The notes: generated by a model from the letters alone, not told the origin. Shown: positions 1 through 25,890, counted from the stretch's first letter. The stretch: DNA of 64,000 bases from Macrostomum lignano (GCA_002269645.1 NIVC01000473.1:1-64000), one strand, 5' to 3'. Translations and numbers: made by a program.

Positions 1-121
1 AGTCGGAATGGATTGTGGCTTCCTACGCGATTGAGAGGCTGATGGTGGCTCTGGGAGTTTTCGCCACAGCTGCAATCATCGAGTGTTTGTTTTGAAACCC
101 ATGATTCAAAATCAAGACTAA
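1..121 (+). CDS. 3' end (M4 helix) of nAChR-like Cys-loop receptor subunit (cluster gene 1), truncated by window edge
   Basis: Frame from base 3 reads SEWIVASYAIERLMVALGVFATAAII, matching the M4 of the paralogues (DWVVAAHAVERLMVAMGVAATAAII). An apparent 1-bp deletion near 81 shifts the tail; the restored frame gives GVFVLKPMIQNQD* with the stop at 119-121. Confidence 0.8.
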
Positions 122-1130
122 GCTGTTTACGAGCGTAAGAGGAATCTACGAGCTATCAACGCGCAGTGAATTTAAGACTGTTTGTTTAAATAATCTTGCT
201 CGAAATTTAACCCACTGATAACTCAGAGTGAGCCTTATTTTTGAAAATTATTGTTTTAATTTTTTCACACATTTGAGGAGGTGAAAATCAGTCGATAATT
301 GGAGTTTACTGGTCTTCAACTTGTACCTCGCTGTGATCTTTGTTCGTATTCACGCCCAAGAAATGTTTATAATCTCAGCTGCACACAATTATGCTCTATC
401 TAAATAAACTCTATTGGACATTATCCTTTCGCTTAAATATAAATTTTTTCTCAACGCTATCTTCATAAAATTTTCTGTCCTAGCTAAATCTTTGAAATAA
501 TACATTCGATATTTTACGAATATATCAGATTTATGTGACGCTTCTAATTGTGACCTTGTGACGCTGCCATCTAAGAACTCTGACAGCGCATTTTGTTTTT
601 GTTTTAACTTCTTAGGGGGACAGTGGGGGTACACATAATTCGTCAATTATTTTACCTTAGTTGTCCAGGACAAAGACATTCGAGTCCTTGCTCGCTAGAT
701 TACAAAATATTGTAAATGGGAAGTATTATACTAGCTCCACTCCTATTGCTTTATGTAAAGGATATACGAGGGTAATGGTGTGTGTTGTGTTAATGTGTGT
801 TAAATCTTGAAGAAATATCTAATTTAGATGAAGAAAAAAAACTGAGTCTGTATTTTACCCTACAGAACCAAAAAACCCTGGGAACAGCACCACTTCAGTC
901 CAATTACAAGCTTATAACTATAGACATAGAACTAAAGCTCCATATAAAACATAGATATAACGATTTACATTACTTCCATTCCGGGATTTCCGGGATTCAA
1001 TACGCTCGTATTATCCTGGAAAATCGTTATGTCTATGCTCTCTTTAGAGGATTAAACATGCATTTTGAGGGAGCTGCAATATTGTAAAAAGCCTGACGGC
1101 CAAATGATAAATCAAATTTAGTATAGAAGT

Positions 1131-3062
1131 TTCCAAGCCAATTGAGCCTAGGAGCAAGCAGTTTAATCCTTATTGGGAGAATCAAGCTATTGAACACTTG
1201 CTTTTCATTGTCTATGGCCCAAAAAATGGGGACTATGGAGCAACCAATTTGAGAATTAATCCTTTTCACAGTGCTCGTATATCCTTCACGAATAACTTTA
1301 CTGAAATAACGTCTGCAAATAGATGGCATATCAAGAAACGATTGACATTAACACTTTGATTTCAGAGAAACCAATCAAACAGGCAAAGGAAAAACCATGG
1401 CATACAGTATAAGCCGAGAACAATCGTGTCTCTCAAAACAGTGTTGGACAGATTGAAACCAAACCCGATCAATGTTCAGAGAATTTCTTCCTCGTTTAAG
1501 CAGTGCGGATGAAGCGAAGCATCTGCCGAAACCAGCCACCGCATTTGGCCTCTGTGATCTCAGCCGTTGTCTCCTCCGCAATCCGATGAAGAACGAGTAC
1601 GCACCACTCGAGCAGTGTTGTCTCTGGCGGTGGATTGTCCAATTCGATTTGCACCTGTGGCTGTGCAAGCTGCCGCTTGATGGCCGCCTTCAAACAGGAA
1701 TGCGCACACTCGGTCGGGTTCAGAATGGAGAATATGGAGGCAGTACTACAACCTGCCAGTTCAGCTCAAACTGCTGGGGGATCCTCAGCCGGCTATGGAA
1801 GCGAGCGCCATCAATGGTTACTAAGAAGTTCTCGGTTGTCTACATCATCTCGATTGTTGACAGCATGGAGCAGCTCTTTCGACAAATGCTTGAAACACGT
1901 TTGAAGTCAGTGTGTGACCGACAATCTTGTGGTGTACCAAGCCGAAATTTGGTGCCAGCTGCTGCTGCAGGAAATTGACCTGAACCCCACGTTGCGTGTG
2001 CAAAACACGTCGGACTCGCTGGCCACGTCTGCTGCGTCCTTGGGACCGGCGAGTTCAAATGTTGAAACCGGTCTCATCAACATAGATGAGGTGATGTTCA
2101 AGTGGAACACCAGTGAACCAGTGAGAAAATTCTCGTCGGCGTGCCCGATATTCAGGACTATTCCTGACCACTGGCACATCGGCGTCTCGACCAAGGCACT
2201 TCAATGTAATCAGCTGTTTGTCCAAGGTCTGGCTTACAGCTGTAGTACTCACTTCGAAGCCTGGATAGGTGTCAGTCAACTTGCGTCGCAACTCTTTCAA
2301 CGTCATTAGAGGATGGATATCCAGTGATGAAAGAAGTAGTTGGATGTGTTTCTCTTCCAGTTTCGATGCTCGATCTCCACCCCGTCGTGCGCGGTCCCGG
2401 CGTCCCGTGATTTCATAGCGACGCCTGATAGAATAAACTGTTTTTCTCTTTACGTCCAGCTATCGCGAAATGTGCTCAGCACTATCACCTCTATCGATGG
2501 CAGCGATAATCAGGTCGTACTTTTCGTTGCTTATCTTGCGATAGGGTTCTCGCCCTGCAGGATTCTGCTCATCTACTCCATCTTGGGCTGTAGCAAAACT
2601 TTCGTCACTGCTCTGCTCGCTAAATTCTTCGTCTGCCATGTCTATGTTTGTCTAATGAAATCTGTTATTTTCTATGGTCTAAGGCTTGCGCAACTGTGGA
2701 AAGGATTAATAGCGCGCCCAAATTCTCAAATTGGTTGTTCCATGGACCCCCTTTCGGGCCATAGACAATGGATAAATAATCAGCGGTCCCAGTGCGTGAC
2801 AACGATTGTCTGGCGAGCGCCGGTAGGCGCGAGCCATAGACAAATCGTTGCCACGTGCTGCGACCGCTGATTCTTTGCATTGTTTTTCTATTTGACGATC
2901 CTAAAGAAAATGCATTGCTTGTAGTAATGGATTGTTCTGCATTAAAAATGTGAATAATGATCGTCAAATTGCTAGACAATGAAAAGCAATTGTCTTCAAT
3001 AGCTTGATCTTCCCACTAAGGATTAAATTTCTTGCTCCTAGCTCAATTGGCTTGAAAAAAAG
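1131..3062 (-). mobile_element. IS630/Tc1/mariner-superfamily DNA transposon, decayed, with long asymmetric terminal inverted repeats
   Basis: 1131-1272 is the reverse complement of 2692-2770 plus 2973-3062 (e.g. caagccaattgagc..ggagcaag..tttaatcctta..gggag..atcaagctattgaa). The repeats enclose a DDE transposase pseudogene. Exact termini and TA TSD not resolved. Confidence 0.8.
1496..2639 (-). pseudogene. IS630/Tc1-like DDE transposase pseudogene
   Basis: ATG at 2639 (MADEEFSEQ...). HTH-like N-terminus (LDVKRKTVYSIRRRY), then YVDETGFN (first D), TIDGARFH (second D) and LPPYSPF[L]NPTE (E). In-frame stops at 2460-2462 and 2055-2057, plus at least two frameshifts. Confidence 0.85.
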
Positions 3063-3308
3063 CAAGTCTATTTTTTTCAAGCCAATATTTATCAAATATC
3101 TCGCTAGAAATGTGATAACACTGGCGCTGCTTTATGCTTTCATATTGATGAAAGCTATCTGTCCAATCGAATTTCAGTAGCAAACGGATTTTCAGGCGAT
3201 CTTTGAGCCCAACCTGTAGTTGGTCGGGGTGAAACGGCATTAAAACTATTTTATCAGACGTACCAGTTGTCAATGCGATCAGCAATGCACTGGAAAATGA
3301 GACATAAA

Positions 3309-4581
3309 ATGCTATTCTCATTCATACTGCTGGTTTCGCTTTTAGCCTCGACACTAGCTACTGATTTCGATGTCCTGCTAATGCAGCACCTAAACAACAA
3401 AATTGCAAACTACAGCCAATGATTCTGCCAATATTAAACAAGACAAAGAAAGTCAACGTGTCGTTTCACATCATGGTCAGCCCATTTGTCTCAGTGGACA
3501 CTGCCAAGCAGAACATCAAAATCGCTGCCTACGTTTAAGCCAGCTGGGAGGAGGAGCGACTCGTGTGGAATCCTGCCGACTTTGGTGGCGTCGGTTCTAC
3601 TAGCTGGGACCCAGCGAAAATTTGGTACCCAATCATCATGACATACAACGGTAACGGCGATGAACAGATTCTGATTCCTCGGATTCCTACTTACACTGGC
3701 TTCTAAAAATTCAAGCGTGACGACGGTTGCTTCATCCTGGCGCCGGGAGTTCGAATTTTTTTGCCAATTCAACATGTCCGACTTTCCGTACGACCAGCAC
3801 ACTTGCGAGCTGCTGTTCTTCCTTGCAACTCAGGCCAATCCTGATGCAATGCGGCCTGTTCGCAGCGCAATGCCCATGCGGGTGACAGGAATTTACAAGC
3901 CTAGCAACGAGTGGATATTGAAAATTGCAACAGCAGATTTGGAAACCAAAAAATATTTTATAATCGAAGGACATAACGAGACCGAACCTTCGAACTTTGT
4001 TCTGCGATTGCACTTGTAGCGAGTGTCAACGTACTATTTCATCAACATCATCACGCCTTTGCTGCTGTTGACTTTGCTCCAGGTGTTGGTGTACTTTGTA
4101 CCCCTGGAGTCCGGTGAGAAGCTGGGATTCGGCATCACAATCATGCTCAGCTACACTGTGTTCTTGCTGCTCCTGGACGGAATCCTGCCGAAGTCGCAGA
4201 AGATGCCCGCCATTGCCCTGTTCATCACGGCCGCCATGGTGCTGTCCACCGTGTCGCTGCTGCTGACATCGCTGACCATGCTGTTCCACTACAGGCCGGA
4301 GGGCAGCCGCATGCCGGAATGCGCTCGGGCGGCCTTTGTTCGATGCCTGGGCCGCCTGCTCTGCGTCAGCGGCGCCACAGGTGGGCCAGCAGAGTCCGGC
4401 TGAAGCTGAGGGCGATGGCAACTGCGTGCGGAAACCGCCTACGGCGGAAGAGAAATCGGTCGATTCAGACTGGGTGGTGGCCACCCGCGCTATCGAGAGA
4501 TTCTTGTCGCTGTTAGGAGTGGTTGCTACCGCCATCATAATTGTAGTCTTTCTGATGGGGCCGTATCTTCAGTTCTCTTAA
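3309..4581 (+). pseudogene. nAChR-like Cys-loop receptor subunit pseudogene (cluster gene 2)
   Basis: ATG at 3309 with a signal-peptide-like start (MLFSFILLVSLLASTLA). Cys-loop CQFNMSDFPYDQHTC, M1-M3 with ESGEKLGFGITIML, and M4. In-frame stops at 3536-3538 (taa) and 4017-4019 (tag), frameshifts near 3418, 3695 and 4390. No introns. Confidence 0.9.
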
Positions 4582-4870
4582 TGAAACTTGAATAACTGAG
4601 ATTTGAATGCTTATGAAAGGCATTGGCATTCTATTGACTACCATATTCATTGATACTCTTTGCAATGGTTTTGTTTTATTTTCTGAATAATCTTCTGAAT
4701 TGAATTTTCGGAATTTTTTAGCTCTGAATTTAGGAAACAGGCATTGATCCCCGGGCCTTCTTGGGCAGTGACTAGATAGATCTGTAGTGAAACATGCGTG
4801 ATCAATTTTTTCATGCATAGGCTAATGCCAATCGCGGAAGGGCTTGAATAAACGAAAGTAACTAGTCACC

Positions 4871-4885
4871 GTTGCCATTGGATAC
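4871..4885. promoter_or_regulatory. X-box-like (RFX) motif GTTGCCATTGGATAC downstream of gene 2
   Basis: GTTGCC half-site, 3-nt spacer, GGATAC half-site, about 290 bp after the gene 2 stop. Confidence 0.35.
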
Positions 4886-5228
4886 GCACTAGTCAAGCGC
4901 GAAATGCAGGCAATGGAAATAGGCTAGGCGTTTTGCTAATGCAATTAACGTTTGGGCAAATATTTGAATAGCTAGCAATGCGGCCCGTTCGTCCAGTTGC
5001 CATTGCTGGGCGCTAAATCTGCTTCAGTTGCAGAGTAAACAGTCTGTATTTCAGCGAGAGCAGAAACCGTGTATAATTAATTAAGTTCTTCCTAGCTAGT
5101 TAATTGATGGTAGCTAGGAGAGGAAAGATTAAGTGCTCTCCCTATAACAAGATTATTATTAATAATAATTACAAAGGGTTGTGGCTTCATCCACTATACT
5201 GCTCTTCTGCAATTCTGAGGCAATTCTG

Positions 5229-5575
5229 GCCATTCCGCCGAGTCCTGAGCACACACAAGCGCGCTAATACTGTAAGCAGGCACGCATTCGTGCACACGCT
5301 CACACAGGGCCTTTTTGACTTTCTAATCGTCAGGGGATGTACACCCTCTGCGCCTTGGGGTTTGGCCCGCATGTGGGCGAGAATCGCAGGACAACCCCCT
5401 GGGCCAACTTTCGTGCACAGGCCCGATATGCATGTGGCCGCGTACTGAACCGATCCCGGGGGTCGCGGGGCGAGTCAGACGGCTCTGCCTACATCGAATA
5501 CCGAAGTCCTCAGAACTTCCGAACTTGGCAACAGAAATCGGCCACAATTCAAAATCAAATCAGAATTCAAGCTTC
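5229..5575. repeat. Dispersed repeat (SINE-like or non-autonomous element), longest copy in window
   Basis: 5229-5352 aligns by eye to 52866-52980 (same orientation) and 33003-33085 (inverted). Ends in an aaatc-rich tail (caaaatcaaatcagaattc). Confidence 0.55.
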
Positions 5576-6139
5576 CATTTAAACACGTACTGTTAAAAAT
5601 TATCCCTTAAAAAGCTTTTTTGAGGCAGAGAGGCAGGAATTACAGATGCAAATTACATATGTAACATGTAAATATTAGACAGGTGAGTTATAATTACATC
5701 AAATTTTTCCTGATCAAACATGAATAGGTACAAAAAATCGAAAAAATACAAATCGAGCTACAAGTTGCGAAGTTTGAATGCAGGTACCAGGTAGGGAGGC
5801 TTGGGTCCATGTGATTTTGCAGCAGTGCATTTAGCTCCGTGGCAGATTTTGTCTGAATCGCATTGAGTCCTAGAGAGTCTTACTAAAGAGCTAGGGATTC
5901 TCCCAATAGAAAATTTCCGGTAGTAACCACATATTAAACTCATGCTTTTCTGGTATGAGAGGTCTTCATTTCTATGTACTCTAACGTGGGGGTACAGTTA
6001 CATCGGTCAGTCATCAATACATGTGTATACCATGTCGCTATGTCCCCTATAGCCTCTTTTCTAAGAATCGGTGGCAGTTCTTGCGCTCGTACATGCAGAT
6101 CTTACCACCTCATCAACACTGACGTTTCCTTATTGCCTA

Positions 6140-7435: not shown

Positions 7436-8688
7436 ATGTTTTCTCAAGTAATCCTAATCGGTTCTCTCTTCACGTATTCAGCAGCAACCGATTTCGATGT
7501 CCTGCTGATGCAACATCTTAAGCAAACCATAAAAAACTACAGTCCTTTCATACTGCCGCGAATTAATAAGACCAAAACTATTAAAGTAGCTACGGACATC
7601 ATGGTCAGCCATCTGGTCTCAGTGGACACCGCCAAGCAGAACTTGAGGATATCTGCCTACTTTCAAGCCAGCTGGGAGGAGGAGCGACTCGTGTGGAATC
7701 CTGCCGACTTTGGTGCACCCAGCTCACTCGCTGGGACCCAGCGCATATCTGGTATCCGACAATCATGATATACAATGGCAACGGCGAGGACCAAGTTCTC
7801 GTGCCTCAGATCCCTGTTGCATTGTTATCGTTAAGGCCAACGCTGACCATAGTCACAGCATACTGGCGCCGGGAGTTCGAGTTTTATTGCGAGTTTAGCA
7901 TGGTTGACTTTCCATACGATCATCATGTTTGCGAGCTGTTATTTATTTACCATAATCAAGGCTATCTCGATTCAATCATTCCTGTTCCGAGCACGGCCCC
8001 TCTGCGTGTGCAGGGAATCTACAATCCGAGCAACGAATGGATTCTGACCAATGCCACCACACACTTTGAAAAGAAACTTTACCACGTATTGGATGCACAC
8101 GAGACTGCATTCCCAGCGTTCGTACTGAGATTGCAATTAAAGCGAGTGTCAACGTACTATTTCATCAACATCATCACGCCTTTGCTGCTGTTGACTTTGC
8201 TTCAGGTGTTGGTGTACTTTGTACCCCTGGAGTCCGGTGAGAAGCTGGGATTCGGCATCACAATCATGCTCAGCTACACCGTGTTCTTGCTGCTTCTGGA
8301 CGGAATCCTGCCGAAGTCGCACAAGATGCCCGCCATCGCCCTGTTCATCACGGCCGCCATGGTGCTGTCCACCGTGTCGCTGCTGCTGACATCGCTGGTC
8401 ATGCTGTTCCACTTCAGGCCGGAGGGCAGCCGCATGCCGGGATGCGCTCGGGCGGTCTTTGTTCGATGCCTGGGCCGACTGCTCCGCGTCAGTACTGCAA
8501 CGTCGCCACGGGTCGGCCAGAAACCGTTGGAGGGTTTCGGCATAGCCGATAGAAGTGCCTTGGAGGTTGCCGGAGAAGCCAGGGAATTCGATTCAGACTG
8601 GGTGGTAGCGGCACGCGCAATCGAAAGGCTCATCTTGCTGTTCGGAGTGGTTGCTACTGCTGCCATCATCGGCTTGTTTTTACTATAG
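7436..8688 (+). CDS. nAChR-like Cys-loop receptor subunit (cluster gene 3), intronless, one 1-bp frameshift
   Basis: ORFs 7436-7768 and 7693-8688 join by a single 1-nt shift near 7712-7726. Signal peptide, Cys-loop CEFSMVDFPYDHHVC and M1-M4 present. Could be a sequencing error or a young pseudogene. Confidence 0.85.
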
Positions 8689-10800: not shown

Positions 10801-11568
10801 TTACGATTCGTTTAAAATTGAACTTCTTGCTAATTTCGTCGAAATGGTTGTCGCCGAGATGGTCTGTTGCCAAATTGGACTGTTACTCGGGCGAGGACAG
10901 ACGCGAACTCGGCGCTCTGTAGACTGCCTGCTGGCCGACACCCGCGCCGCAGATTTAGCTTTGAGGCACGGCCTGCGTGCCGGGCTGCTCTTGATTTATA
11001 AGACCCAACGGACAGGTTAGTTTGATTTTGTCACCTGCTGTATAGACTAAAATTCAACTTCAAAACGACATGGCTTTGAAAGGGAGCGAAGAATGCTTGT
11101 AGGATTTATCCAATTTATTAATTAAACAGATAGTAGCTATACACATAATATTCACGTAAATTTCATTAGCATCCTTTTGCAACATGCTAGCATACATGGA
11201 ATACATATCCGAGAATGCTATATAAAGGTGCGCCGCGCGTATCCGTGCTAAAGATAGTTCGCTACTGCAGGCCGCACCCAGACCAGAAAATGCAGCGATG
11301 AAAAGTTTCTATGCAAATAACGACGTCAAACGAGGTCAGGGATCTGCTAATTGGAATATCAGACCAATATAAGCAGCTAACTTTACGATATTTGATCTAT
11401 TGAATTACCTAAATGAAATTCAAATAAGAATCAATCTAGAATTTACACTAGCACGCCAGGGTGATGAGTTGCGAGATCTCTGGTGCTGTATATATATGGC
11501 TGCAGTGGAAAACCGAGCAACTTACAATTAACCGATCAATTCAAAGCAAAGCCCTGTCTCGTGGCAAA

Positions 11569-12846
11569 ATGCTCGCTAGAACAGCGATCCTTTTATGTCT
11601 TCTAAAAGCTGTTACGCCAACGACTGTCGACTTTGACGCCAAGCTGCTAAAATATCTAAAAAACAATACCGATCACAGTCCGTTGCATTTTCCAAGAATC
11701 GACAAAACCAAGATGCTAAACATATCGCTGAACTTCTTGCTGAGCCACATTGTCTCCGTGGACACAGCTAAGCAAAGCATGAAGGTGTCAGCATACGTTG
11801 AAGCCAGTTGGGAGGAAGAGCGACTCGTTTGGAACCCGGAAGACTTCGGCAATACCGTGTACACCCGATGGGAAGCTGAACAGATTTGGCACCCGATCAT
11901 CATTGTCTACAATGGCAACGGCGATGATCAGACATTGGTGCCGAAAGTGTTTGTCGGATTGCAGTCGAAAACGCCTAATTTGTCCGAGGTGAAGGCCACT
12001 TGGCGACGCGAGATCGAAGTATTTTGCGCATACAACATGGCCGAGTTTCCGTTTGATCGACACACTTGCGATATAAAAATATTTGCCACTGATGCATACT
12101 ATGAACTCTTGATGCAACCAGCGGTTTCACCTAACAAGTATAACCTTCTGGGTATTTACCAGGATAGTAAAGAATGGAATCTTGATGCTGCTACAGTCAG
12201 AATATTGGCCCAAAAATATGACATTTATCAAGAGTTTGAAGCCGTTCAACTATCCACTTACAACATCGAAATAAAAATTAAAAGGATATCAACCTATTAT
12301 GTAATCAACATTATAATTCCTCTGTTGCTGCTCGCCCTGCTCCAAGTGCTGGTGTACTTTGTGCCCCTGGAGTCCGGTGAGAAGCTGGGATTCGGCATCA
12401 CAATCATGCTCAGCTACACCGTGTTCCTGCTACTCCTGGACGGAATCCTGCCGAAGTCGCACAAGATGCCCGCCATTGCCCTGTTCATCACGGCCGCCAT
12501 GATGCTGTCCACCGTGTCGCTGCTGCTGACATCGCTGGTCATGCTGTTCCACTACAGGCCGGAGGGCAGCCGCATGCCGGAATGCGCTCGGACGGTCTTT
12601 GTTCGATACCTGGGCCGCCTGCTCTGCGTCAGCGGCGCCACTAGGGCATCACAGAAGACCAATCAAATTGCTGTCGAAGGCTATACAGAGAACAAAAATG
12701 CCCGGAGGCCAAGTGAAAAAGAAGCGTCAGAATCGGACTGGGAAGTAGCAGGTCGAGCAATCGAGAGGCTCATGTCGCTAATGGGCGTTGTTGCTACTGC
12801 CGCCATTATTGGGGCATTCCTGCTGAGGCCACTGTTAGCTAACTAA
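11569..12846 (+). CDS. nAChR-like Cys-loop ligand-gated cation channel subunit (cluster gene 4), intact, single exon, 425 aa
   Basis: Uninterrupted ORF. Signal peptide MLARTAILLCLLKAV, WEEERLVWNP, WHPIIIVYN, Cys-loop CAYNMAEFPFDRHTC (C-x13-C), M1-M3 with GEK, short M3-M4 loop, M4. No loop-C CC. Confidence 0.95.
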   Translation: MLARTAILLCLLKAVTPTTVDFDAKLLKYLKNNTDHSPLHFPRIDKTKMLNISLNFLLSHIVSVDTAKQSMKVSAYVEASWEEERLVWNPEDFGNTVYTRWEAEQIWHPIIIVYNGNGDDQTLVPKVFVGLQSKTPNLSEVKATWRREIEVFCAYNMAEFPFDRHTCDIKIFATDAYYELLMQPAVSPNKYNLLGIYQDSKEWNLDAATVRILAQKYDIYQEFEAVQLSTYNIEIKIKRISTYYVINIIIPLLLLALLQVLVYFVPLESGEKLGFGITIMLSYTVFLLLLDGILPKSHKMPAIALFITAAMMLSTVSLLLTSLVMLFHYRPEGSRMPECARTVFVRYLGRLLCVSGATRASQKTNQIAVEGYTENKNARRPSEKEASESDWEVAGRAIERLMSLMGVVATAAIIGAFLLRPLLAN

Positions 12847-12999
12847 CTAATTAAACAACATAATGCTATTAACAACTGTGAGAACTAATTTTATGTTTGT
12901 TTTTATTAGTGTTGCTAAATTATTAACTGGTTTTGCAACTCATATTGATATTCTTGCTTTAAAATTGTCATGACATACATAAATAATTAATTTTGATTT

Positions 13000-13085: not shown

Positions 13086-13819
13086 ATAATTTTTCCGGCT
13101 TGGGCGCTGTCAACTAAAATAAATATTTATTTACGGCGTCCCCATTATGCTTATTATAGGACGGAATACACACACGCTGCTATCTGCTTACGTATAATAT
13201 ACTCAATATATTATCTACGCTACTAATATGTAGTAGTTTAGCTATTTTTTGTACAATTTGATGTTGGAAAATGTTGGAAGATGTTGGTCTTTTTACATAC
13301 CCGTTGGAATTCCCGTTAAAAGGTTGGGAGTATATTTTCGATATCGCATTTGCATTGTAAAGCGAAATATTATATTAAAAGTGATACCAACTTAACGCTC
13401 TAGAATGGAGCCCGAAGTAAGGCTCCGGATAAAATATATACATAGACGGACAAGTCGGAGATATTCTCTAAGAGAGTTCCAGAAACGAACTTGCAGTGAT
13501 AGGATTTTTCGTTATTTATTTCAGCCAGTCGGTTTGTCAGTTTTTTCGGGAATCTACTTCGAGCTTACTTACTTCTATGTACTTACAGTGCTTAATTTGA
13601 CAGCCCCTTTCGAACATTTTGAAGAGTTTCTCTTTACTACTACCATGCAGTAGTTGATAATGTATATTTTACCAGCTTTCTCGTTTACTAACACACGGAG
13701 GATTCGTGCGCTCAGGGGGTAAGGGATATTTAGTCAAACACGGAAGCAACGTCACGAGTTATATTGCACACAAGAGTACCTCCACAAATGAAATTAATTC
13801 AATTACAGCAGTCCCACTC

Positions 13820-13833
13820 GTTGCCATGGCGAT
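13820..13833. promoter_or_regulatory. X-box (RFX/DAF-19-type) motif GTTGCCATGGCGAT upstream of gene 5
   Basis: Matches RTHNYY-WT-RRNRAC at all but the last base, about 146 bp upstream of the ATG. Conserved in the paralogous promoter of gene 6. Confidence 0.55.
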
Positions 13834-13978
13834 TGATTCAGCACTGGTAGACCAGACGCGTTATTGGCTAAACAGCTATCCTATAGGGTCTTTTCTTCAA
13901 CTCTGCTTTCTATGATGATATAGAGTAGAAAGCAGTAACCAACATTTGCCTCTTACACCGTATCGACACATCGACACA

Positions 13979-15268
13979 ATGTCCGTACGCGAAATTCTAC
14001 TAGTCGCCACAGCGATTATAGCTGCCACTTGTGGCGGCTCAGCTCAGCATAGAGACCTGGAGCAGGAGCTGCTGCAGTACTTGAAGAACAATATCACCAA
14101 CTATAGTCCGCTGCTGCGACCCACAATTAACGCCTACAAGCCTACTTACATCACTATGGACACATCCTTGACCCAGCTGGTATCGGTAGACAGTGCCAAG
14201 CAAAGCGTCAAGATTGGGGCTTTCGTAATGGCCGGCTGGACTGAGGAGCGTCTGGTCTGGGATCCGGCCAAGTTTGGGAACCTAACCGTGATTAACTGGG
14301 ACAATTCGAATGTCTGGTTTCCTGTCATCCTCATCTATAATGGCATCGGAGACAACCAGATGCTCACTCCACAGATGCCAGTGTATTTAATGTCGATCCG
14401 ACCCAACCTCACCAAAGTCGTCGCCGGGTGGCGTCGAGAGTTCGAATTCTCGTGTGAGTTCGACGTGAGCAAATTCCCCATAGACAAGCACGTCTGCGAG
14501 CTCGAGTTCTTCTTTAGCGACCAGGGCCATGACAACCAAATGCTGATTCCTTTCAAGAACAATATGAAGCCATTCCAAATAGATGGACTTTATCGAACTA
14601 ACAGCGAATGGAAGTTGGTGAATGCGTCGACGTCGTCCGAACGGAAGCCGTACAAACTCGTTCAAGGTGCACCGGATGTGCTTCTACCAACTTATGTAAT
14701 CCGTCTGGAGATCGAGAGAGTCTCTGCTTACTACTTTATGAACATCATCACACCACTGCTACTGCTGACTTTGCTACAAGTGTTGGTATACTTTGTGCCC
14801 CTGGAGTCTGGCGAGAAGCTGGGATTCGGCATCACAATCATGCTCAGCTACACTGTGTTCCTCCTTCTGCTGGACAGCATCGTGCCCAAGTCGCAGACAA
14901 CACCAGCGATCGCTTCGTTCATCACAGCCGCTATGATCTTGTCGACGATATCTCTGCTACTAACGTCGCTAATTATGCGTCTGCACTTTGCTCCGGAGGG
15001 CAATCGGATGCCGGCCTGCATGCGTGCCGTTTTGATTGGCTTCTTGGCTCGAGTGTTCTGCGTTGGCGGCGCTGCCAAAATCAACAAGGTCGAGATCAAG
15101 AATGGGACTAGCATCGAAAAAAAGAACACTACTGATGAAGAGGACACTCCGGTTGTTCGATCCGATTGGGTGGTTGCTGCGCACGCTGTCGAACGACTCA
15201 TGGTTGCTATGGGAGTGGCCGCCACCGCTGCTATTATTGGAGTTTTCGTCATCCAACCGTACACTTAA
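13979..15268 (+). CDS. nAChR-like Cys-loop receptor subunit (cluster gene 5), intact, single exon, 429 aa
   Basis: Uninterrupted ORF. Signal peptide, Cys-loop CEFDVSKFPIDKHVC, ESGEKLGFGITIMLSYTVF, M4. Confidence 0.95.
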   Translation: MSVREILLVATAIIAATCGGSAQHRDLEQELLQYLKNNITNYSPLLRPTINAYKPTYITMDTSLTQLVSVDSAKQSVKIGAFVMAGWTEERLVWDPAKFGNLTVINWDNSNVWFPVILIYNGIGDNQMLTPQMPVYLMSIRPNLTKVVAGWRREFEFSCEFDVSKFPIDKHVCELEFFFSDQGHDNQMLIPFKNNMKPFQIDGLYRTNSEWKLVNASTSSERKPYKLVQGAPDVLLPTYVIRLEIERVSAYYFMNIITPLLLLTLLQVLVYFVPLESGEKLGFGITIMLSYTVFLLLLDSIVPKSQTTPAIASFITAAMILSTISLLLTSLIMRLHFAPEGNRMPACMRAVLIGFLARVFCVGGAAKINKVEIKNGTSIEKKNTTDEEDTPVVRSDWVVAAHAVERLMVAMGVAATAAIIGVFVIQPYT

Positions 15269-15662
15269 AGACCGCAAGAGATTATACTGAGTCGGCTTAT
15301 GAAACTTTCTGAAAAAAGATTCTTTAATAATAATAAATTCTCTATGCTTCTATCTTCTAATTAAATGAATTAATTCACATCAAAAGTGCATGGGTGCTTC
15401 TAGTCTTTTCATTTAATCGAGCGAATTTCAGCATTATTCTGTTCTACGAGCTATGCTAATTGTATGCCACTCTGTGCCACTAGAGACAACTAAAATCAGA
15501 TTATGCAAACATATAAAAAACAGCTCTGGTTCTCTACTCACAGCAATTGCTGCCGCAGTAGGCTTGCACCCCAATCCTTCATAAAACGATAGGTTCATCA
15601 AGAGGATAGCTACTCAATCATGCAGTAAACTAAGAGGCACTTTTCATGATTGCAAATGGTGA

Positions 15663-15676
15663 GTTGCTATGGTAAC
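15663..15676. promoter_or_regulatory. X-box motif GTTGCTATGGTAAC downstream of gene 5
   Basis: Full match to the RFX palindrome consensus. Conserved at the equivalent position after gene 6. Confidence 0.55.
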
Positions 15677-17649
15677 AGTTAACCAATTCTCAGCAAAGGC
15701 TTGGTAAGCACTCGATAAAACTAACTGTGGGCAGAGCCTTCAGCGAACAGGCAGGACTATTGTTAATTTAACGAAATCACCAGCTTTTTGGGGAGAAAGT
15801 TTTAGAGAGCGTGTGCTTGCTGCCACCAGAAAAAGTTATTTGCAAAGACGATTTTTTTCAACAGGTGGAATAAAGGCCCGTTTGAGCTACTGAAACTTGA
15901 AAGCGGAACCGGGCATTTTTATTCAGCTCGAGAGGGAGAATCCAAACACGAATGGAATAAAATATGACGGAAACAACTACAAGTATGTGCATATGGCATA
16001 TTTCTATATATCGATATATAATAGACACAACCACAGATCCTAAATCTTAGTCAATTAATCAGGCTTCGCAAAAGAACATAACTAAACACAGGATTGCTTT
16101 GGTTTAAATTTTTACATGTAAAAAAACTATCAATTGATGCGACTATTTATAAAATTTTACGAAAACCAACGCAAGTGTCAATGACCTTTCATTTTGCAAT
16201 ACTTGGAGGGATGGATGGATGGAAACAGGCACGTCAAGTTAAAAGATAACTATTTGGACTGCTCTGAAACAAATAAATAGGACCAGAATATTTTTATGTT
16301 GGCAGAAAATTAAAGCTGTTTTCCGGGTAAGCAATTCTCTAAAAAGGTTTCGAGAAACAAGGCATCTAGGCCTTTTCTATTCTTTTTCACGATCCCTGGT
16401 TCTGGTTTGGTTCCTGTTAGGAGACGTGGGAAAGCCGGAAGGGCCTCCTTGCGAGTTGTGCGGGTGGTGCTGCACTCAGAGGTCTTGTGAGATGGCGCCA
16501 GGTTGCAGCTCTCCAGCCGGTTGTGGAGACCGCCTTGCTGTAATTGTACTGAGCTATTATTGTCACTTTTGGATGCACTCTGTCAAAATGGATGCAAATA
16601 TGCAAGTTTTGTTCAATAGACAGCGAGACAAAGGCACTGTATTGTAACCCAGTGTCAAAACTGAATGCACACTGTCAAATGTACTAGCAAATTGTGAATA
16701 AAGGTTGGAGTTTGTCTTTTTCGCGGTTGAAAATCGGCATTATTTTGCATTTGTGTTTGTCAAAGTAGATTGAAAATTTCAACAAGCGATACAACAGACT
16801 GTCAAAATTGAATGCAAAGATGTCAATATTGAGTGCAGATTTTCCAAAAATAGAAAGTAAAAAGGTGTAGCTAAAACTCAGTCTTGTTGTTTCTGTGAAA
16901 CACTCTATTCGTGAGCTACTTCCTAAGTTGAATCTTAGGTTCAAATTTTGCTGTGTGAAGCGCCCCCAGCTGGGAGTTGGAAGTCTTTCCCTACTGGGAG
17001 AAAATATTAAGCGGCAAATCACATGACTATAGGTGTTGTGGCTCTGGCTTGTGACCCTCAGATAAAAATCCGGCTTATGCCACTGACATCTGGCTGCTGT
17101 GGGCTAGACCAAGGTAGCTAATATGCAAATTTTTGTAAGAATAATAAAAATTTTTCTACCTTCCGTCTATATCTATATGAAACATTCTGTTGGGGCGCTA
17201 AGTTGACAATATTTACTCATCTCATGCTCGACATGCCAATTGAAAATAGAGCTAGTATTTGTTTGGTCTGAAGTTAAATTATTTGGTTGGATTATTGCCG
17301 ACTAGACCAAGTTAATTGACTTTTTTCTTCTTCAGAAGTGCTCCTCGGAGGGTAAGAAAACAGATTGAGGCCTCTAAAAAGTTGAGATGTTTGACGCGAC
17401 GCAGGTGTTAGGGTTTCAAATCTCTGGCCTCTTACGATCTCCGGTGCCTTACGTTCTCCTGTAGGCATAATTAAAAGCCTAGGGATTTTTTATAAAGGCA
17501 TTAAAGTTGATAAGAAATTAGTAGCCTTTGAGATCGTCACACGTGTGCTATGTACGCAGTGCTTACTTGTCAAATGAGTATACGAATAAATAATACTAAT
17601 AGCTCAGTACTATACAGTTCACCACATGCCTTGGCTGCTTCATTATGGC

Positions 17650-18950: not shown

Positions 18951-19535
18951 AGATGTTTCAGTCTGAATGTACTAGCTGACTGCTCTTAAAGGGTGCGTCA
19001 ATGGACAGCAATCGAAACGCTGCTTCAACTTTGTTAGCCGAAGTGGACCGATTAATTAATTACCAATGTTTGATCTTAGTATAAGCTATCTGTTTTACTA
19101 AGTAACGAATAGATATTTGTCAGCAAGTAAGACGGTTTCAGTAACTATTCCATTTTCTTTAGATGAGTAAAATGTACACTACTTTTTCTAATATAGTGGT
19201 CTGATTGAGTGAACAGCCTTGGAACTATTGTGAAAGAGAAATAATTTTGATGCCTGCACTTTCGGTCTTTAAAGGACATGTGATCACAGCGGGACCGCAG
19301 ACAAGAAGATGGAAATCCTAAAGCAAACCTTTTGTGAGGTTGCGTTTGATTTGTGCAGTTGGGGTGGTGGCTGCTCTATTATTATTTGCATCTCGCTTTA
19401 CTCTGTGCATGCCGCCACCCCAGTTGGGTGACTCATTTTATAACCCTTCTATCGCTGACTATATAATCGCTCCCCATTTATTGTGCATGTCAAATATACT
19501 TCGTGATTTTGACTCTAATTTCTCGGCTCTTACAT

Positions 19536-19546
19536 TGGTGGCAGCG
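19536..19546 (+). promoter_or_regulatory. Primer-binding site TGGTGGCAGCG (tRNA-Leu-type)
   Basis: One nt after the LTR-terminal ...ttaca; complementary to a tRNA 3' end ...CGCUGCCACCA. Confidence 0.7.
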
Positions 19547-19568
19547 AGAACCCAGTGCAAGTGCACTT

Positions 19569-20350
19569 ATGGCCCAGAACACCCTGCTACCGCCAAAGTT
19601 CAGTGGAACAGACTGCTCTGACGTGAGAAAATGCCTACGCATCTTCGAGGAGTTTGCCAACGATGCGAAATGGGACGATGAGACCTCAGCATCGAAAGTG
19701 AAACTGCTGCTTACGGGAGAAGCCCAACTGGTCGTCTGGGACCTCGCCGAGACGAGGCAGAAGAGCTTCAAGAGCATCAAAGAGGACCTCACAAAGTTTT
19801 ACGGAGGTGAATCCGACAGCTTTAAGGCTATGAGTGATTTCTACTCGAGGAAGCGTGGAGACACCGAGACGCTCCGTGAGCTCTGCTTCAACCTGAAGCT
19901 GCTGTACCAGAAGGCCAGGCCGAGTGACTCAGTTGCTCAGTGGGACCGAGATGTGCGTTTCAAACTTCTGCAGCTGCTCAAGGCCGACATTCGCGACAAC
20001 CTGCTCAAGACAGAGGACGCAGAGAGCTGCTGCCTGGAGACTCTGCTGCGGCGTGCGGCTCGGCTGGAGAAGCTGGCTTGGCGACAGGACCGCCTGGACC
20101 GACTGGAGAAACGCATGAAGGAGCTCATCGCGAGGGTCAGCGTGCAGTCCGGTATCGACACTCGGCGTCGCCGTCAGCAGCGAGGAGGCGGCTGCTTCAA
20201 CTGCGGCCAGCTCGGACACCGTGCAGCGCAATGTCAGCAGCGTCAGAAACAGCCGGACCAGATCATCTGCCACAAGTGCTCGGGGCGAAGGCACAAGGCC
20301 TCCGTCTGGCCATCCAAGGCTCCGGGAAACTTCAAAGGGTTGGTGCAACG
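19569..20350 (+). CDS. Retrotransposon Gag with zinc knuckles
   Basis: MAQNTLLPPKFSG..., CFNCGQLGHRAAQC (CCHC) and a degenerate second knuckle CHKCSGRRHKASVW. Confidence 0.85.
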
Positions 20351-23300
20351 GGTGCGGGACTCACACCAACCCGAAGGAGCAATCCCGTGCTTCATGCGAT
20401 TTTTGTTCCTGGAGAGGCAAACAGCAAGCCGTGCCGCTGGCTGCTGGACACCGGAGCGCAGACCTCACTGATCAGCGACGTTGCCTTGAGAGCTGGACGG
20501 TCGCGGCGAGCTGAAGCCGGCAGGCGTCAGGCCTGTGTCCGTGGACGGCTCCGCCCTCGAGCTGCTGGGAAGTGTGAGCATTACCGTGCGACTCGGTCAT
20601 CAGCTGCGCAGACAAATGGACGTGCTGGTGGTCAGAGTTATTCGCTTAGACTTCATCATCGGGATGGATTTCGTGAGAAAGGCGGCCAGATCGCAGTTCA
20701 GCATCGACCGGGGTGCCAAGACAGTCGCATTCGATGGTGAGGCGGTTCCGTTCAGTAACTGCGATTCCAAGCAAGATGACCCGCTGTCCTGGTGCTTGGT
20801 ACCCACAGTGATCATCGCCAGAGTTCAGGGCGCCGTCGTGGTGCCGCCAAGGTCAGTTAAAGTCGTGGACGTGACGACAGAGACCAAGCAGGCACAGGGC
20901 ATCTTCGAGCCGTCACAGGAGTTCATCGACAGAATCGGAGTGCTGCCCGGCCGCGTGTTCGCGGTGTCTTCAGCGAGCGGCAAGATCCCGGTTCAGGTGT
21001 GCAACCTTAGCTGCAGCCCGGTCACGCCGTTCTCCAACCAGAGCATCGGCACTTTCGAGAGCGCGGAGGTAATCGATGAGGACGAGGACGTGCACGAGTG
21101 GCGAGGCCCCGCGGACCAGTTCAACATTAATCCGGAGCTGCCAGAGGAGGACAGAGACCGACTGGCGAGGCTGCTGAGGGCATTTTCCAATGTGGTCTCA
21201 GTCCATGAATTTTTAGTATATGGAATTTGACGTTTGGACGAGCAGCGCAGCGCAGCACAAGATTGAGCTTGACGACGGCGCACGCCCGATTCGCCAACGG
21301 CCTCGGCGGGTGCCTCACGCCTTTAGGAGGCAGGTGGACGAGAAGCTGGGGCAGATGCGATAACATGGCGTCATCGAGCCTTCCACCAGCCCGTGGGCGA
21401 GCAACCTGATAATCGTCAGGAAGAAGAATAATGACATCCGAGTCTGTGTCGACTGACGGGCGCTAAACAACCTTACGGTGAAGGACGCCCACCCGCTGCC
21501 GCATTTGCACCAGGTGCTCGACTCTTTGGCTGGCTGCTCATAGTTCTCTACGATTGATATGCGCCAAGGCTTCCTTCAGGTGGAGGTCAGAAAGGAGGAT
21601 CGGCCGTTGACAGCGTTCTACACTCCGAGCGGCCTGATGCAATTCTGCAAAATGGGATTCGGCATGTGCAACGCGCCTGCAACGTACCAGCGAATGATGG
21701 AGCTCATCATGACTGGTCTGAGCTGGGAGGAGGTCGTCGCGCACATTGATGACCTGATCATCTTCAACAGGGACTTTGAGAGCCACGTTCAGTCGCTGTC
21801 CAAGGTGTTGCATCGACTGCGGTCTGCCAAGCTGAAGCTGAACCCCGGCAAGAGCTTCTTCCCCAACCGGAGCGTCACGTACCTGGGCCACCAAGTCTCT
21901 GAGAGCGGCATCGCACCTGCCGCGGAGAAGGTTGAGGCGATCAGGCGGATGCCAGAGCCACAGTCCGAGAAGGATGTCCGGCGCATCATCGGCATGCTCA
22001 GCTTCTACCGCAGGTTCGTGCCCAACTTCTCTGACATTGCCAAGCCGCTGCATCACTTGGCGCAAAAAAGCGGGCTGCGACTTCGTGTGGATGCCAGAGC
22101 ATGCTGCGGCGCTGATCAAGTTGAAGGACGCGCTGACCAAGGCCGCGGTGCTCCAGCTGCCCGACTTCAGCCGGTCTATCGTCATCAGCTGTGACAGCAG
22201 CGCTGTGGCCTTGGGTGCGGTGCTCAGCCAGGAGCTGCCAGTGGCCTACGCATCCCGGACGCTGAGCAAGGCAGAGCGCAACTACAGTACAACGGACCGG
22301 GAGCTGCTCGCGATTGTATGGAGCCTCAAGCAGTTCCGCATGTACCTGAGCAACAGCCGCAAGATCCAAGTGTTCACCGACCACAAGCCAATCACCGGGC
22401 TGCTCAACGCGAAGGAGCCAATCGGTCGGCTCGCACGTTGGCTGCAACTCATTCAGGAGTTCCCCCTGGAGATCCTGTACCGGCAAGGCAAGGAGAACAT
22501 CGTGCCAGACGCCCTCAGCCGAGCACGCGGTTCTACACGCGGTTCGGCACGCGATGCTCCAGCCCGACTTTCAAGTTCCGGCGGCGGCGAGTGAGTCGGT
22601 CCAAAAGCTCACCGGACGGCGCACTGCTCCGCAACGGGCTGCCAGTGATCCCACAGCACATGCGAGCGGAGCTGCTGCAACAGGCGCCGACCGGCCGAGC
22701 GCGGGTTACCTCGGACAGCGGCGGGTGCTGCGAGCCTTGCGCGAGCGTTCCTCGTGGCCGGACATGCGCGAGGACGTGCAGGACTGGGTGCGGAGCTGCC
22801 TGGTCTGCCAACGCCGCAAAGGAGCGCCAAAGCGAGCGCGCGCTGAGCTGGTGCGGCAACCGCTACCGGCCAAGCCACGGGGTGTCATGCAGATCGACAT
22901 CAAGGGCCCGCTGCCAGCCACCGATTCAGGCAAGCGCTACATCCTCTGCTTTGTTGACACATTTTTTAAATTGGGTGGAGGCTGCCGCCCTCAGCCAGAT
23001 CGACGCCAAGACGGTAGCCGAGGCTCTGGTGACTTGCGTGGTGCTGCGGCACGGAGTTCTGGAGGTCGTGCACTCGGACTCGGATCGAGGCCGAAGTTTT
23101 CAAGCAGACCTGCGCGCTGCTCGGAGCAGAAAAATCGAGGACCTCACCGTTTCACCCCAGCGGCAACGGGAACGTCGAGAGGTTCAATAGAGGTCCAGCA
23201 AATTTCGTTGGACGCTGGGCAACATGCTCTCGGCATTCTGCTCGGAGAACCAAGCCGGCTGGGATGCCCTGCTGCCCTACGTCGTGTGGGCCTACAACAG

Positions 23301-23913
23301 CTCTGAGCATAGCTCCACGGGCAAGTCGCCGTTCAAAGTTCTACGCGGCATGGAGCCCAGACTGCCAGTCGACTTGGCGCCCGGTGGGCAGCGCGACCAG
23401 CCGCAGGACTGCGCGGACCTGCAGGCGAGAATCAGGCGCGGCTTCCAGGTGGTGCGAGCGCACCTGCACACGGCCCAGAGATCGCAGCACGAGTTCTACA
23501 ATCTAGGGGCAGAGACTACCGACTTCAACACCGGTGACCGAGTGATGCTTGACGCACCATGCGATGAAGCGCGGCCAGTGCAAGACGCTGTCGAACCGGT
23601 GGTCCGTCCCGTTCATCGTCCTTAAGAAGGTTCAGTGAACTACCGGCTGCGGGCTGTGAACGGCAGGCCCTGGTTGCTGGTCCACCACGACCGCTTGAAG
23701 CACTTTATCGACCGACCGAATCTGAGCGACAGGCCGCCAGCCAAGCCGGCCACCGAGGACGACTGTCCGAGCGTCGAGGGCTCCGCGGGCCAGCTGGTCG
23801 GCCCGGACGCCTGGGAGCAGCTGCGCGACCCGAATGCGGCTGAACCCGGCAACGCGCTACGTCGGTCGGGCAGGCAGCGACGGCGGCCGGATTTTTACAC
23901 GGCGACCAGTTGA
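20350..23913 (+). pseudogene. Gypsy pol (protease, RT, RNase H, integrase), frameshifted
   Basis: Protease LLDTGAQTS. RT GFGMCNAPATYQR, AHIDDLII (Y of YxDD replaced by H) and YLGH. RNase H CDSSAVALGAVLSQ and ERNYSTTDRELLA, TDHKP. Integrase QIDIKGP, FVDTF and WDALLPYVVWAYN. In-frame stops at ~21455 and 21541. Confidence 0.9.
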
Positions 23914-24417
23914 CGAGCTTTCTGTCTGCTACTTGATTGGGACTTTTTCGTGTTGCATGAACCCTTTTTGTTGTTTTACTTTTGTTTTATTCCGTTTCTT
24001 ATCAAGCTCGCAGATCCTAAGCTGATTTGCGATCCCCTGGTCGAATGGTGGCTGCCTCGCAACTCCGAGGTAGACTAATCAGAGAGTTCCCCGGAAACTG
24101 CGAAGCAGCCACCGTTCACCGAACCGGAGATTGCAAAGAACTTGTAGTCTCCAGAAGAAACCCCTAAGGCCAGCCAGGAGACCGTACAGTCACTTTACAT
24201 CATCTTGACGAGTTACAAATTCTTACTAACAGTAGTTAGATAGATCATGCGTGTTTTACAAGCTTTATTTTACAAGTATTTTATTAACGCGAGGACTAGT
24301 GCACCCCGGGGGAAATGGTATAGTTAGCCAAACACGGAAGCAATATTGGCATTTGTGACGAGCGTATACTTCCTAACTTCTACAAACGAGATTCATCCAA
24401 TTACAGCAGTTCCACTC

Positions 24418-24431
24418 GTTGCCATAGCGAC
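24418..24431. promoter_or_regulatory. X-box motif GTTGCCATAGCGAC upstream of gene 6
   Basis: Full match to RTHNYY-WT-RRNRAC, about 152 bp upstream of the ATG. Confidence 0.6.
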
Positions 24432-24582
24432 GGCTTCAACAATGGTAGGTGAGACGCATTCTGTTTAACAGATTTGCTTATGGTGCTTTGCTTCAGCTCT
24501 GCTTTCTATTTAATTCTGCCGTAAAGTAGAAAGCCGTAACTAACACAGTAACCAAAATTTGCTTCTTACACATATCGACACA

Positions 24583-25890
24583 ATGTCCGTACGCGGAATT
24601 CTACTAGCTGCCACAGCAATTTTAGTTGCAACTTGTGGCGGCTCAGCTCAAGATAGAGATCTGCAACACGAGCTGCTGCAGTACTTGAAGAACAATATCA
24701 CCAACTATAGTCCGCTGCTGCGACCCACAATTAACGCCTACAAGCCTACGTACATCACTATGGATACATCCTTGACACAGCTGGTATCGGTAGACAGTGC
24801 CAAGCAAAGCGTCAAGATTGGCGCCGTTTTAATGGCCGGCTGGACTGAGGAGCGTCTGGTCTGGGATCCGGCCAAGTTTGGGAACCTAACCGTGATTAAC
24901 TGGGACAATTTGAATGTCTGGTTTCCTGTCATCCTCATCTATAATGGCATCGGAGACAACCAGATGCTCACTCCGCAGATGCCAGTGTATTTGATGTCGA
25001 TCCGACCCAACCTCACCAAAGTCGTCGCCGGGTGGCGTCGAGAGTTCGAATTCTCGTGTGAGTTCGACGTGAGCAAATTCCCCATAGACAGGCACGTCTG
25101 CGAGCTCGAGTTCTTCTTTAGCGACCAGGGCCATAACAACCAAATGCTGATTCCTTTCAAGAACAATATGAAGCCATTCCAAATAGACGGACTTTATCGA
25201 ACTAACAGCGAATGGAAGTTGTTGAATGCGTCGACGTCGTCCGAACGGAAGCCGTACAAACTCGTTCAAGGTGCACCGGATGTGCTTCTACCAACTTATG
25301 TGATCCGCCTGGAGATCGAGAGAGTCTCCGCCTACTACTTTATGAACATCATCACACCACTGCTACTGCTGACTCTGCTACAAGTGCTGGTATACTTTGT
25401 GCCCCTGGAGTCTGGCGAGAAGCTGGGATTCGGCATCACAATCATGCTCAGCTACACTGTGTTCCTTCTTCTGCTGGACAGCATCGTGCCCAAGTCGCAG
25501 ACAACACCAGCGATCGCTTCGTTCATCACGGCCGCTATGACCTTGTCGACGATATCTCTGCTACTAACGTCGCTAATTATGCGTCTGCACTTCGCTCCGG
25601 AGGGCAATCGGATGTCGGCCTGCATGCGTGCCGTTTTGATTGGCTTCTTGGCTCGAGTGTTCTGCGTTGGCGGCGCTGCCAAAATCCATAAGGTCGACGG
25701 AGCAGAGGACGTCGAGATCAAGAATGAGACTAGCATCGACAAAAAGAATGCTACTGACGAAGAGGACACTCCGGTTGTTCGATCCGATTGGGTGGTTGCT
25801 GCGCACGCTGTCGAACGACTCATGGTTGCTATGGGAGTGGCCGCGACCGCTGCTATTATTGGAGTTTTCGTTATCCAACCGTACACTTAA
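24583..25890 (+). CDS. nAChR-like Cys-loop receptor subunit (cluster gene 6), intact, single exon, 435 aa; recent duplicate of gene 5
   Basis: Uninterrupted ORF nearly identical to gene 5. The flanks 24185-24580 and 25890-26420 are homologous to 13600-13978 and 15270-15850. Confidence 0.95.
   Translation: MSVRGILLAATAILVATCGGSAQDRDLQHELLQYLKNNITNYSPLLRPTINAYKPTYITMDTSLTQLVSVDSAKQSVKIGAVLMAGWTEERLVWDPAKFGNLTVINWDNLNVWFPVILIYNGIGDNQMLTPQMPVYLMSIRPNLTKVVAGWRREFEFSCEFDVSKFPIDRHVCELEFFFSDQGHNNQMLIPFKNNMKPFQIDGLYRTNSEWKLLNASTSSERKPYKLVQGAPDVLLPTYVIRLEIERVSAYYFMNIITPLLLLTLLQVLVYFVPLESGEKLGFGITIMLSYTVFLLLLDSIVPKSQTTPAIASFITAAMTLSTISLLLTSLIMRLHFAPEGNRMSACMRAVLIGFLARVFCVGGAAKIHKVDGAEDVEIKNETSIDKKNATDEEDTPVVRSDWVVAAHAVERLMVAMGVAATAAIIGVFVIQPYT

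Follow-up and report, generated by a model that had tools for sequence, protein, structure and literature searches.

A tandem array of intronless nAChR-like genes in Macrostomum, probably encoding non-cholinergic channel subunits

The 64,000-nt stretch of Macrostomum DNA analysed here (NIVC01000473.1, positions 1–64,000; hereafter the window) carries a tandem array of Cys-loop receptor genes related to nicotinic acetylcholine receptors (nAChRs). Searching the window by tblastn with the open reading frame (ORF) at 13,946–15,268 as query located six copies within positions 1–25,890, all on the plus strand (c0–c5, Table 1), and no further copy past 25,887. This agrees with a preceding reading made from the DNA alone (the sequence-only reading), which had counted at least six co-oriented paralogues in 26 kb. 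The left edge of the window cuts the array, and comparison with the syntenic M. lignano contig NIVC01000059.1 (L001) indicates that members continue upstream. Three intact intronless copies are present on that contig: Ml_a, Ml_b (the c0 orthologue) and Ml_c (the c1 orthologue). These three, like c3, c4 and c5, are coded in a single exon from the start Met to the stop; the starts of the window genes were placed at the first Met preceding the hydrophobic N-terminus. Single-exon genes of 425–435 residues had also been read correctly, and the minus-strand neighbours, which encode a class-V aminotransferase, HPF1 and cullin-5, each have several exons.

Table 1. Features of the array and of the DNA within it. 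Positions are those of the window unless marked L001.
Feature	Position	Strand	Description and basis
c0	1..121	+	Final ~39 codons (M4, stop) of an upstream member that the window edge truncates; tblastn
c1	3309..4581	+	Pseudogene; compared with intact M. lignano orthologue
c2	7436..8688	+	Full-length, one 1-nt deletion near 7,717; tblastn frames 2 then 1
c3	11569..12846	+	Intact, single exon, 425 aa; ORF, no stops
c4	13979..15268	+	Intact, single exon, 429 aa; ORF, Pfam; copy modelled by AlphaFold
c5	24583..25890	+	Intact, single exon, 435 aa; recent duplicate of c4
Gene-conversion tract	c3 12289..12641; c1 4026..4378; c2 8135..8492; L001 13542..13894	+	From before M1 to just past M3; nucleotide identity
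Retroelement fragment	19503..23306	+	Degenerate, Ty3/gypsy-like; separates c4 and c5; outside the gene family

The array combines intact genes (c3–c5), a pseudogene (c1) and a recent duplicate (the c4/c5 pair), a coexistence that the sequence-only reading had recognised. The c1 copy was compared with its intact orthologue on L001 (12,825–14,105; coding sequence 94.8% identical in nucleotides). One nucleotide is deleted at 3,419, one is inserted at 3,684 and eight are deleted at 4,375, and nonsense substitutions have created TAA at 3,536–3,538 and TAG at 4,017–4,019. Because nonsense substitutions cannot arise as indel-type assembly errors, c1 is a real pseudogene. When aligned with the c1 orthologue, c2 has 17 nt near 7,717 against 18 in this paralogue and is otherwise open over 417 codons; it is either a young pseudogene or the product of an assembly indel. 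Introns were rejected as an explanation for the shifting frames of c1 and c2, which result from indels of 1–8 nt, accompanied by the nonsense substitutions. The three-frame translation of c0 reads SEWIVASYAIERLMVALGVFATAAII in frame 3 and then VFVLKPMIQNQD* in frame 2, a single frameshift relative to its M. lignano orthologue PAA92206.1; the syntenic counterpart on L001 lies at 11,184–11,626.

The c4 and c5 genes lie in duplicated blocks (13,600–15,820 and 24,186–26,406) and are 96% identical in amino acids (dS 0.10, dN 0.02, dN/dS 0.19; all such values are Nei–Gojobori estimates). Their products are distinguished by 19 substitutions and by a 6-residue insertion in the intracellular loop (intracellular domain, ICD) of c5. 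Substitutions located at the binding loops are the adjacent F82V and V83L in loop D, and D185N in loop B.

The Neur_chan_LBD and Neur_chan_memb domains scored above the Pfam gathering score in all four copies tested (for c3, 4.5e-27 for the ligand-binding and 2.9e-23 for the transmembrane domain). A Cys-loop of the form C-x13-C, noted before, is seen in every copy and encloses an F-P-x-D motif; C159, C173, P167 and D169 of c4 are unchanged throughout a 51-sequence alignment. The same alignment was used to model c4 with AlphaFold (AF2; pLDDT 86.7, pTM 0.76), an earlier model from 6 sequences (pLDDT 55) being set aside. The model contains an N-terminal hydrophobic helix, a β-sandwich, M1–M3, a post-M3 helix, ~35 disordered residues and M4, and thus the four transmembrane helices that had been proposed. 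A putative signal peptide was recognised by eye at the N-terminus of the intact genes. The M3–M4 segment, formerly described as very short, is indeed short for an nAChR, but at ~60 residues that description was overstated.

The closest solved relative of c4 is the human alpha7 nAChR (E 3e-43 in a PDB sequence search), and the best PDB matches are alpha7, alpha4, alpha3 and muscle nAChR subunits, followed by 5-HT3A. The fold of the c4 model matches alpha4beta2 with TM-scores of 0.78/0.88, and the range across alpha4beta2 and alpha7 is 0.72–0.88. By domain content and topology the family sits in the Cys-loop, or pentameric ligand-gated ion channel, superfamily. Its predicted channel residues, GEK at M2 -1', the Leu 9' gate and no Pro-Ala-Arg anion motif, assign it to the cationic nAChR/5-HT3 branch.

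The acetylcholine (ACh) binding site was compared column by column in the 51-sequence alignment, with positions indexed by the alpha7-like protein P0084, between six family members (five for loop D) and 45 outgroup sequences. The loop-B Trp, the cation–π partner of ACh, is found in none of the six members and in 43 of the 45 outgroup sequences; the counts for the Asp of the WxPD motif are identical. The loop-D Trp is missing from all five members and present in 37 of the outgroup. At the tip of loop C no member has the vicinal Cys-Cys pair, which 28 of the 45 outgroup sequences have; the two positions are occupied by L/I/V and V/Y/L/I/F in all six. The second loop-C Tyr, a Tyr in 27 of the 45, is replaced by Leu or Phe throughout the family. 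Small, polar or aliphatic residues now fill the lost pocket positions. Read from these columns, the family lacks both the aromatic box that marks an ACh-binding nAChR subunit and the Cys-Cys pair that marks an nAChR alpha subunit, and its orthosteric site would be unable to bind ACh in the canonical manner on either face. The family is thus probably non-cholinergic. The sequence-only reading had likened these divergent, nAChR-like subunits to cephalopod ones that lost ACh binding, and the Pfam domains, PDB matches and alignment columns bear out both the nAChR descent and the missing canonical residues.

The pore is conserved. All six members keep E-1', K0', T6', L9', V13' and L16', every copy has SGEK before M2, and the outer 20' acidic ring is displaced by one residue (D19'). 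These residues argue for a cation-type pore under strong constraint. Two other assignments were considered and rejected: an ACC-type anion channel, given GEK rather than PAR, and a 'Cys-less' ligand-gated ion channel (LGIC), given the Cys-loop cysteines.

The family is under purifying selection, with dN/dS of 0.05–0.12 in the first three transmembrane segments and 0.16–0.30 over the whole gene. Among seven paralogues, segment identity is 0.96 in M2, 0.85 in the transmembrane module M1–M3 and 0.45 in the extracellular domain (ECD), and among mature segments conservation is lowest in loop B (0.26), loop C (0.29) and loop F (0.34). A near-invariant pore combined with binding loops that vary most would fit diversification of ligand specificity.

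Part of this pattern stems from exchange between copies. In a tract of ~350 nt (Table 1), c1, c2, c3 and Ml_c are 90–92% identical in nucleotides, compared with ~72% in the ECD. Synonymous divergence among c1, c2 and c3 is only 0.18–0.33 in M1–M3; in the ECD it exceeds 1.2 or reaches saturation. Synonymous sites in M1–M3 are themselves unconstrained, because c3 and c4 differ there with a pS of 0.63 though the encoded protein is nearly identical. The low divergence among c1–c3 at unconstrained sites therefore points to gene conversion of the pore cassette, with homogenisation confined to the channel module. The locus evolves as genes duplicate in tandem (c4/c5), decay into pseudogenes (c1, perhaps also c2 and c0) and undergo conversion that holds the pore module uniform.

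Homologues were collected with HMMER in an exhaustive scan covering 1.84 billion representative proteins, used instead of a word-indexed protein search that returned only 2–3 family members and missed canonical nAChRs. The scan gave three close matches, P0002 (48% identity), P0003 (67%, a fragment) and P0014 (42%, a fragment); the rest were at or below 33%. A cluster look-up showed that these three, together with P0001/P0152 (62% to c4), are M. lignano proteins (PAA92206.1, A0A1I8GG98 and others). The suspected flatworm origin of the window was therefore correct, since the close relatives all belong to M. lignano and a contig of that species is syntenic. There was no schistosome protein among the close matches. 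The proteins ranking next are those of a clam, a hemichordate, hookworms, corals, amphioxus, octopus, a mite, a chiton, Nematostella, a nemertean and gastropods, with no other flatworm among them and no particular lineage favoured. The octopus protein P0037 was considered as a chemotactile receptor (CR) and rejected; with a match to alpha4/alpha7 at 1e-92, it is a canonical nAChR. Exact-product look-ups of c3, c4, c5, P0001 and P0002 found nothing on record, and P0152 alone led to the contig. No paper describing the Macrostomum clade was found in the literature.

A neighbour-joining tree of 126 nAChR-like proteins (394 columns, 100 bootstraps), built with cephalopod CR sequences absent, recovered the family as monophyletic in 100 of 100 replicates on a long branch. 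Distances are 0.04–0.84 inside the family and at least 1.5 to the nearest outgroup, which is of mixed phyla. Two subclades are resolved, one of c4, c5, Ml_b and Ml_a and the other of c1/Ml_c, c2, c3 and P0002, the latter with 95% support. The window, L001 and the annotated proteins together reveal at least eight lineages (Ml_a, c0/Ml_b, c1/Ml_c, c2, c3, c4, c5 and P0002), and the public sets hold only four annotated proteins of the clade. One-to-one orthologues across phyla, which would have spoken against a lineage-specific family, were found neither by HMMER nor in the tree; the clade is lineage-restricted by both.

The window and L001 are 82–95% identical in nucleotides and differ in content. 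Downstream of its three copies L001 carries a c2 remnant and then GIPC1. The window instead has c2, c3, c4, c5 and three unrelated genes before a GIPC1-like sequence at 57.5–59.5 kb, and c3–c5 are absent from the syntenic L001. In coordinates, 8.8–57.5 kb of the window faces 16.4–20.7 kb of L001, where the interval from the c2 remnant to GIPC1 spans ~3 kb; the extra window DNA comprises c3, c4, c5, the retroelement, the aminotransferase gene, HPF1, minisatellites and cullin-5. This structural difference reflects either divergence of homeologues or haplotypes, or another species, a close congener. With P0014, M. lignano has a third version of this c1 gene, whose reading frame changes beyond residue ~213. 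The c1 copy on L001 is thus intact, that of the window is broken and P0014 is possibly broken too, which could result from independent decay in duplicated genome copies or from indel errors of early assemblies.

Expansions of this general kind are known elsewhere. Molluscs and annelids carry 52–217 nAChR genes per genome, bivalves 99–217 (Jiao et al., 2019, BMC Genomics; PMC6896357). Many of the expanded mollusc genes are intronless (11–120 per species) and stand in tandem arrays with as many as 12 genes, attributed to retroposition and subsequent duplication in tandem; only a minority of expanded nAChRs keep the full set of ACh-binding residues, and expression is diverse, covering gill, gonad, embryo, and stress and infection responses (PMC6896357). 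That survey covers molluscs, annelids and cnidarians, and a text search of it returned no flatworm. The Macrostomum array resembles these expansions in its ligand-binding and transmembrane architecture, its single-exon co-oriented tandem arrangement, its lineage-specific clade, its many members without alpha-type cysteines or complete ACh residues, and the pseudogenes among its copies. It differs in visible number, with ~8 lineages seen in the window, on L001 and as P0002 against 52–217 genes per genome, and in the partial conversion of the pore module, which Jiao et al. do not describe. To speak of a novel family is accordingly too strong: nAChR genes without introns, expanded in tandem and degraded at the ACh site, are known in molluscs and annelids (PMC6896357), and an orphan of comparable type, Alpo4, is known as well (PMC10338036). 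As to the proposed expansion, a lineage-restricted tandem clade does exist, but it appears small, with at least eight lineages compared with 26 octopus CRs and 99–217 bivalve nAChRs. The array is best filed as a small flatworm example of the known lineage-specific, intronless, tandem expansions of non-cholinergic nAChR-like genes.

The cephalopod CRs are nAChR-derived and intronless, with 26 in Octopus bimaculoides and 6 in squid, and assemble as non-selective cation channels, both homo- and heteropentameric, that take hydrophobic ligands, with a pocket under diversifying selection (PMC11526382). Their sensory expression and hydrophobic ligands have been demonstrated (van Giesen, 2020; Allard, 2023; Kang, 2023; reviewed in PMC11526382). 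Common to CRs and the Macrostomum family are nAChR descent, intronless genes, tandem expansion, the missing ACh aromatic box, a cation pore and the proposed homo- or heteropentamers. Unlike CRs, the Macrostomum genes belong to another phylum, and they form a separate long-branch clade in a tree without CR sequences. Alpo4, an orphan nAChR-like receptor of the annelid Alvinella pompejana (PDB 8BX5 family), is gated by neither ACh nor serotonin, and its authors themselves draw a parallel to CRs (PMC10338036). It shares with the present family a lophotrochozoan/spiralian origin, candidacy as an nAChR-like homopentamer, the lack of vicinal cysteines and an isolated phylogenetic position, but keeps the loop-B Trp and key aromatics (PMC10338036) that the Macrostomum proteins have lost. 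In terms of sequence features, the family resembles a CR- or Alpo-type orphan. Closer in taxonomy are the ~21 schistosome LGICs, which include ACCs with a PAR/PAK motif and a 'Cys-less' clade (PMC9874803). These are likewise divergent flatworm Cys-loop channels related to nAChRs (PMC4055736; PMC9874803), but the ACCs have the PAR/PAK anion motif where the Macrostomum family has GEK, and the 'Cys-less' channels lack the Cys-loop cysteines, present here as C-x13-C.

Taken together, the array probably encodes Macrostomum-restricted orphan subunits of pentameric cation channels, nicotinic in descent, that have lost the ACh site and evolve by birth-and-death and gene conversion. The subunits may assemble into homo- or heteropentamers; a ligand other than ACh would bind the remodelled subunit interface, open the cation pore and depolarise the cell. 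Paralogues may also differ in ligand specificity, since loops B, C and F diverge fastest. Several observations weigh against this account. All six members retain a Tyr in loop A and the first Tyr of loop C, and the loss of canonical ACh binding is read from an alignment. Lesions affect two or three of the six copies. The intact genes c3, c4 and c5 match no recorded protein in the public sets and for this reason may be weakly expressed or silent; PAA92206.1 is the sole orthologue in the transcript-based M. lignano annotation. Orphans of the Alpo4 type can moreover resist deorphanisation and may not gate in heterologous systems (PMC10338036).

Several of these observations would also fit a decaying retrogene cluster with no present function: c1 has five lesions, c2 and c0 have one frameshift each, c3–c5 are missing from both the syntenic M. 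lignano contig and the annotated protein sets, and intron-poor mollusc nAChRs are more often unexpressed (PMC6896357). Such decay is very improbable in view of three intact ORFs of 425–435 codons, dN/dS of 0.05–0.3 even when the young c4/c5 pair is included, and an M2 that is 96% identical among paralogues whose synonymous sites are saturated. The genes might instead encode structural non-alpha subunits that co-assemble with conventional alphas into ACh-gated receptors, as the nAChR-like pore and the missing vicinal cysteines, typical of non-alpha subunits, would allow. This too is improbable, if slightly less so, since the loop-B Trp and the WxPD Asp are retained by 43 of the 45 outgroup sequences, non-alpha types included, and lost here in all six members, the complementary loop-D Trp is also lost so that both faces of the site are degraded, and the very long branch separates the family from canonical subunits.

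Two readings concern what a non-cholinergic channel family would sense. Many invertebrate nAChR-like orphans have proved to be gated by small endogenous molecules. Like the deorphanised divergent Cys-loop channels of nematodes, the Macrostomum subunits could serve in neurons or muscle as receptors for an endogenous transmitter or modulator other than ACh, such as choline, betaine, an amine or a peptide. The strong purifying selection, the invariance of the pore and the two retained tyrosines of loops A and C fit a physiological channel of this sort. Restriction to Macrostomum, fast binding loops and rapid turnover, seen in the pseudogenes, the recent duplicate and the presence–absence differences between the window and L001, would be unusual for receptors of a conserved transmitter, and reception of an internal signal is put forward tentatively, at somewhat less than an even chance. 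It is nevertheless at least as likely as a chemosensory role. The latter, detection of an external chemical, was the proposal of the sequence-only reading and rests on analogy; we regard it as rather doubtful. In its specific form the subunits would be ionotropic chemoreceptors of ciliated or peripheral sensory neurons for environmental or prey molecules, an independent analogue of the CRs, which is likewise on the unlikely side. Its appeal lies in the CR-like hallmarks of the array, intronless and tandem genes, birth-and-death, nAChR descent, a lost pocket and a kept pore (PMC11526382), as well as in variation concentrated in the binding loops and in the aliphatic character (L/I/V/F) of the loop-C and Y195-equivalent positions. 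In this they resemble the hydrophobic CR pocket. Set against this are the apparent smallness of the family beside the octopus CRs, the absence of any CR chain from the 60 best PDB sequence matches and the 50 best fold matches, which argues against a specific affinity to CRs, and the expression of comparable mollusc expansions in gill, gonad and embryos and in response to stress or infection, not specifically in chemosensory organs (PMC6896357). The broader scenario is unlikely, a little more so than the chemoreceptor proposal itself: in flatworms, nicotinic receptors would independently have given rise to a small family of ionotropic chemoreceptors that evolves fast and is convergent with CRs, and in which conversion keeps the pore constant while the binding loops diversify.

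Were the family sensory, it would represent a second independent recruitment of nicotinic receptors as chemoreceptors, after the cephalopod CRs, and the transition from transmitter receptor to chemoreceptor would become comparable experimentally across phyla. M. lignano is amenable to transgenesis, RNAi and in situ methods, and because of this tractability the family would then provide a system for studying the change from neurotransmitter to sensory receptor. The lophotrochozoan pattern of intronless tandem nAChR expansion is now extended to Platyhelminthes, at least three intact genes without a match in the public protein sets are flagged, and the array offers a clean case of mosaic evolution, with a pore module homogenised by conversion beside binding loops that diverge freely. 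The pattern is unsurprising to specialists after the work of 2019–2023, and it offers parasitology little of practical use, no neodermatan orthologue having been found.

The remainder of the window contains repeats and unrelated genes. In the retroelement fragment between c4 and c5, the domains zf-CCHC, RVT_1 and RT_RNaseH lie in different frames. A zinc knuckle, a protease motif, reverse transcriptase, RNase H and integrase-like ORFs can be followed along it with shifting frames. Its GC content is 0.60–0.62, compared with ~0.45 nearby, and no direct long terminal repeats flanking it were detected. Searching with the cullin-5 exons gave identities of at most 71% to various animals, with Macrostomum not among the matches, and there were no Rfam matches in the window. 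A minisatellite of 7.7 kb at 40,796–48,495 (30-bp unit, ~259 copies, 90% match, GC skew +0.6) yields long spurious ORFs on both strands. Another, with a 42-bp unit, occupies 37,950–40,162 (~52 copies) and recurs inverted, in ~11 copies, at 52,345–52,822 within a cullin-5 intron. Between 27 and 51 kb, several further minisatellites (periods 16–131 bp) take up intronic and intergenic DNA. Towards the right end, ORFs at 60,828–63,773 resemble, by eye, the C-terminal reverse transcriptase and RNase H of a non-LTR retrotransposon.

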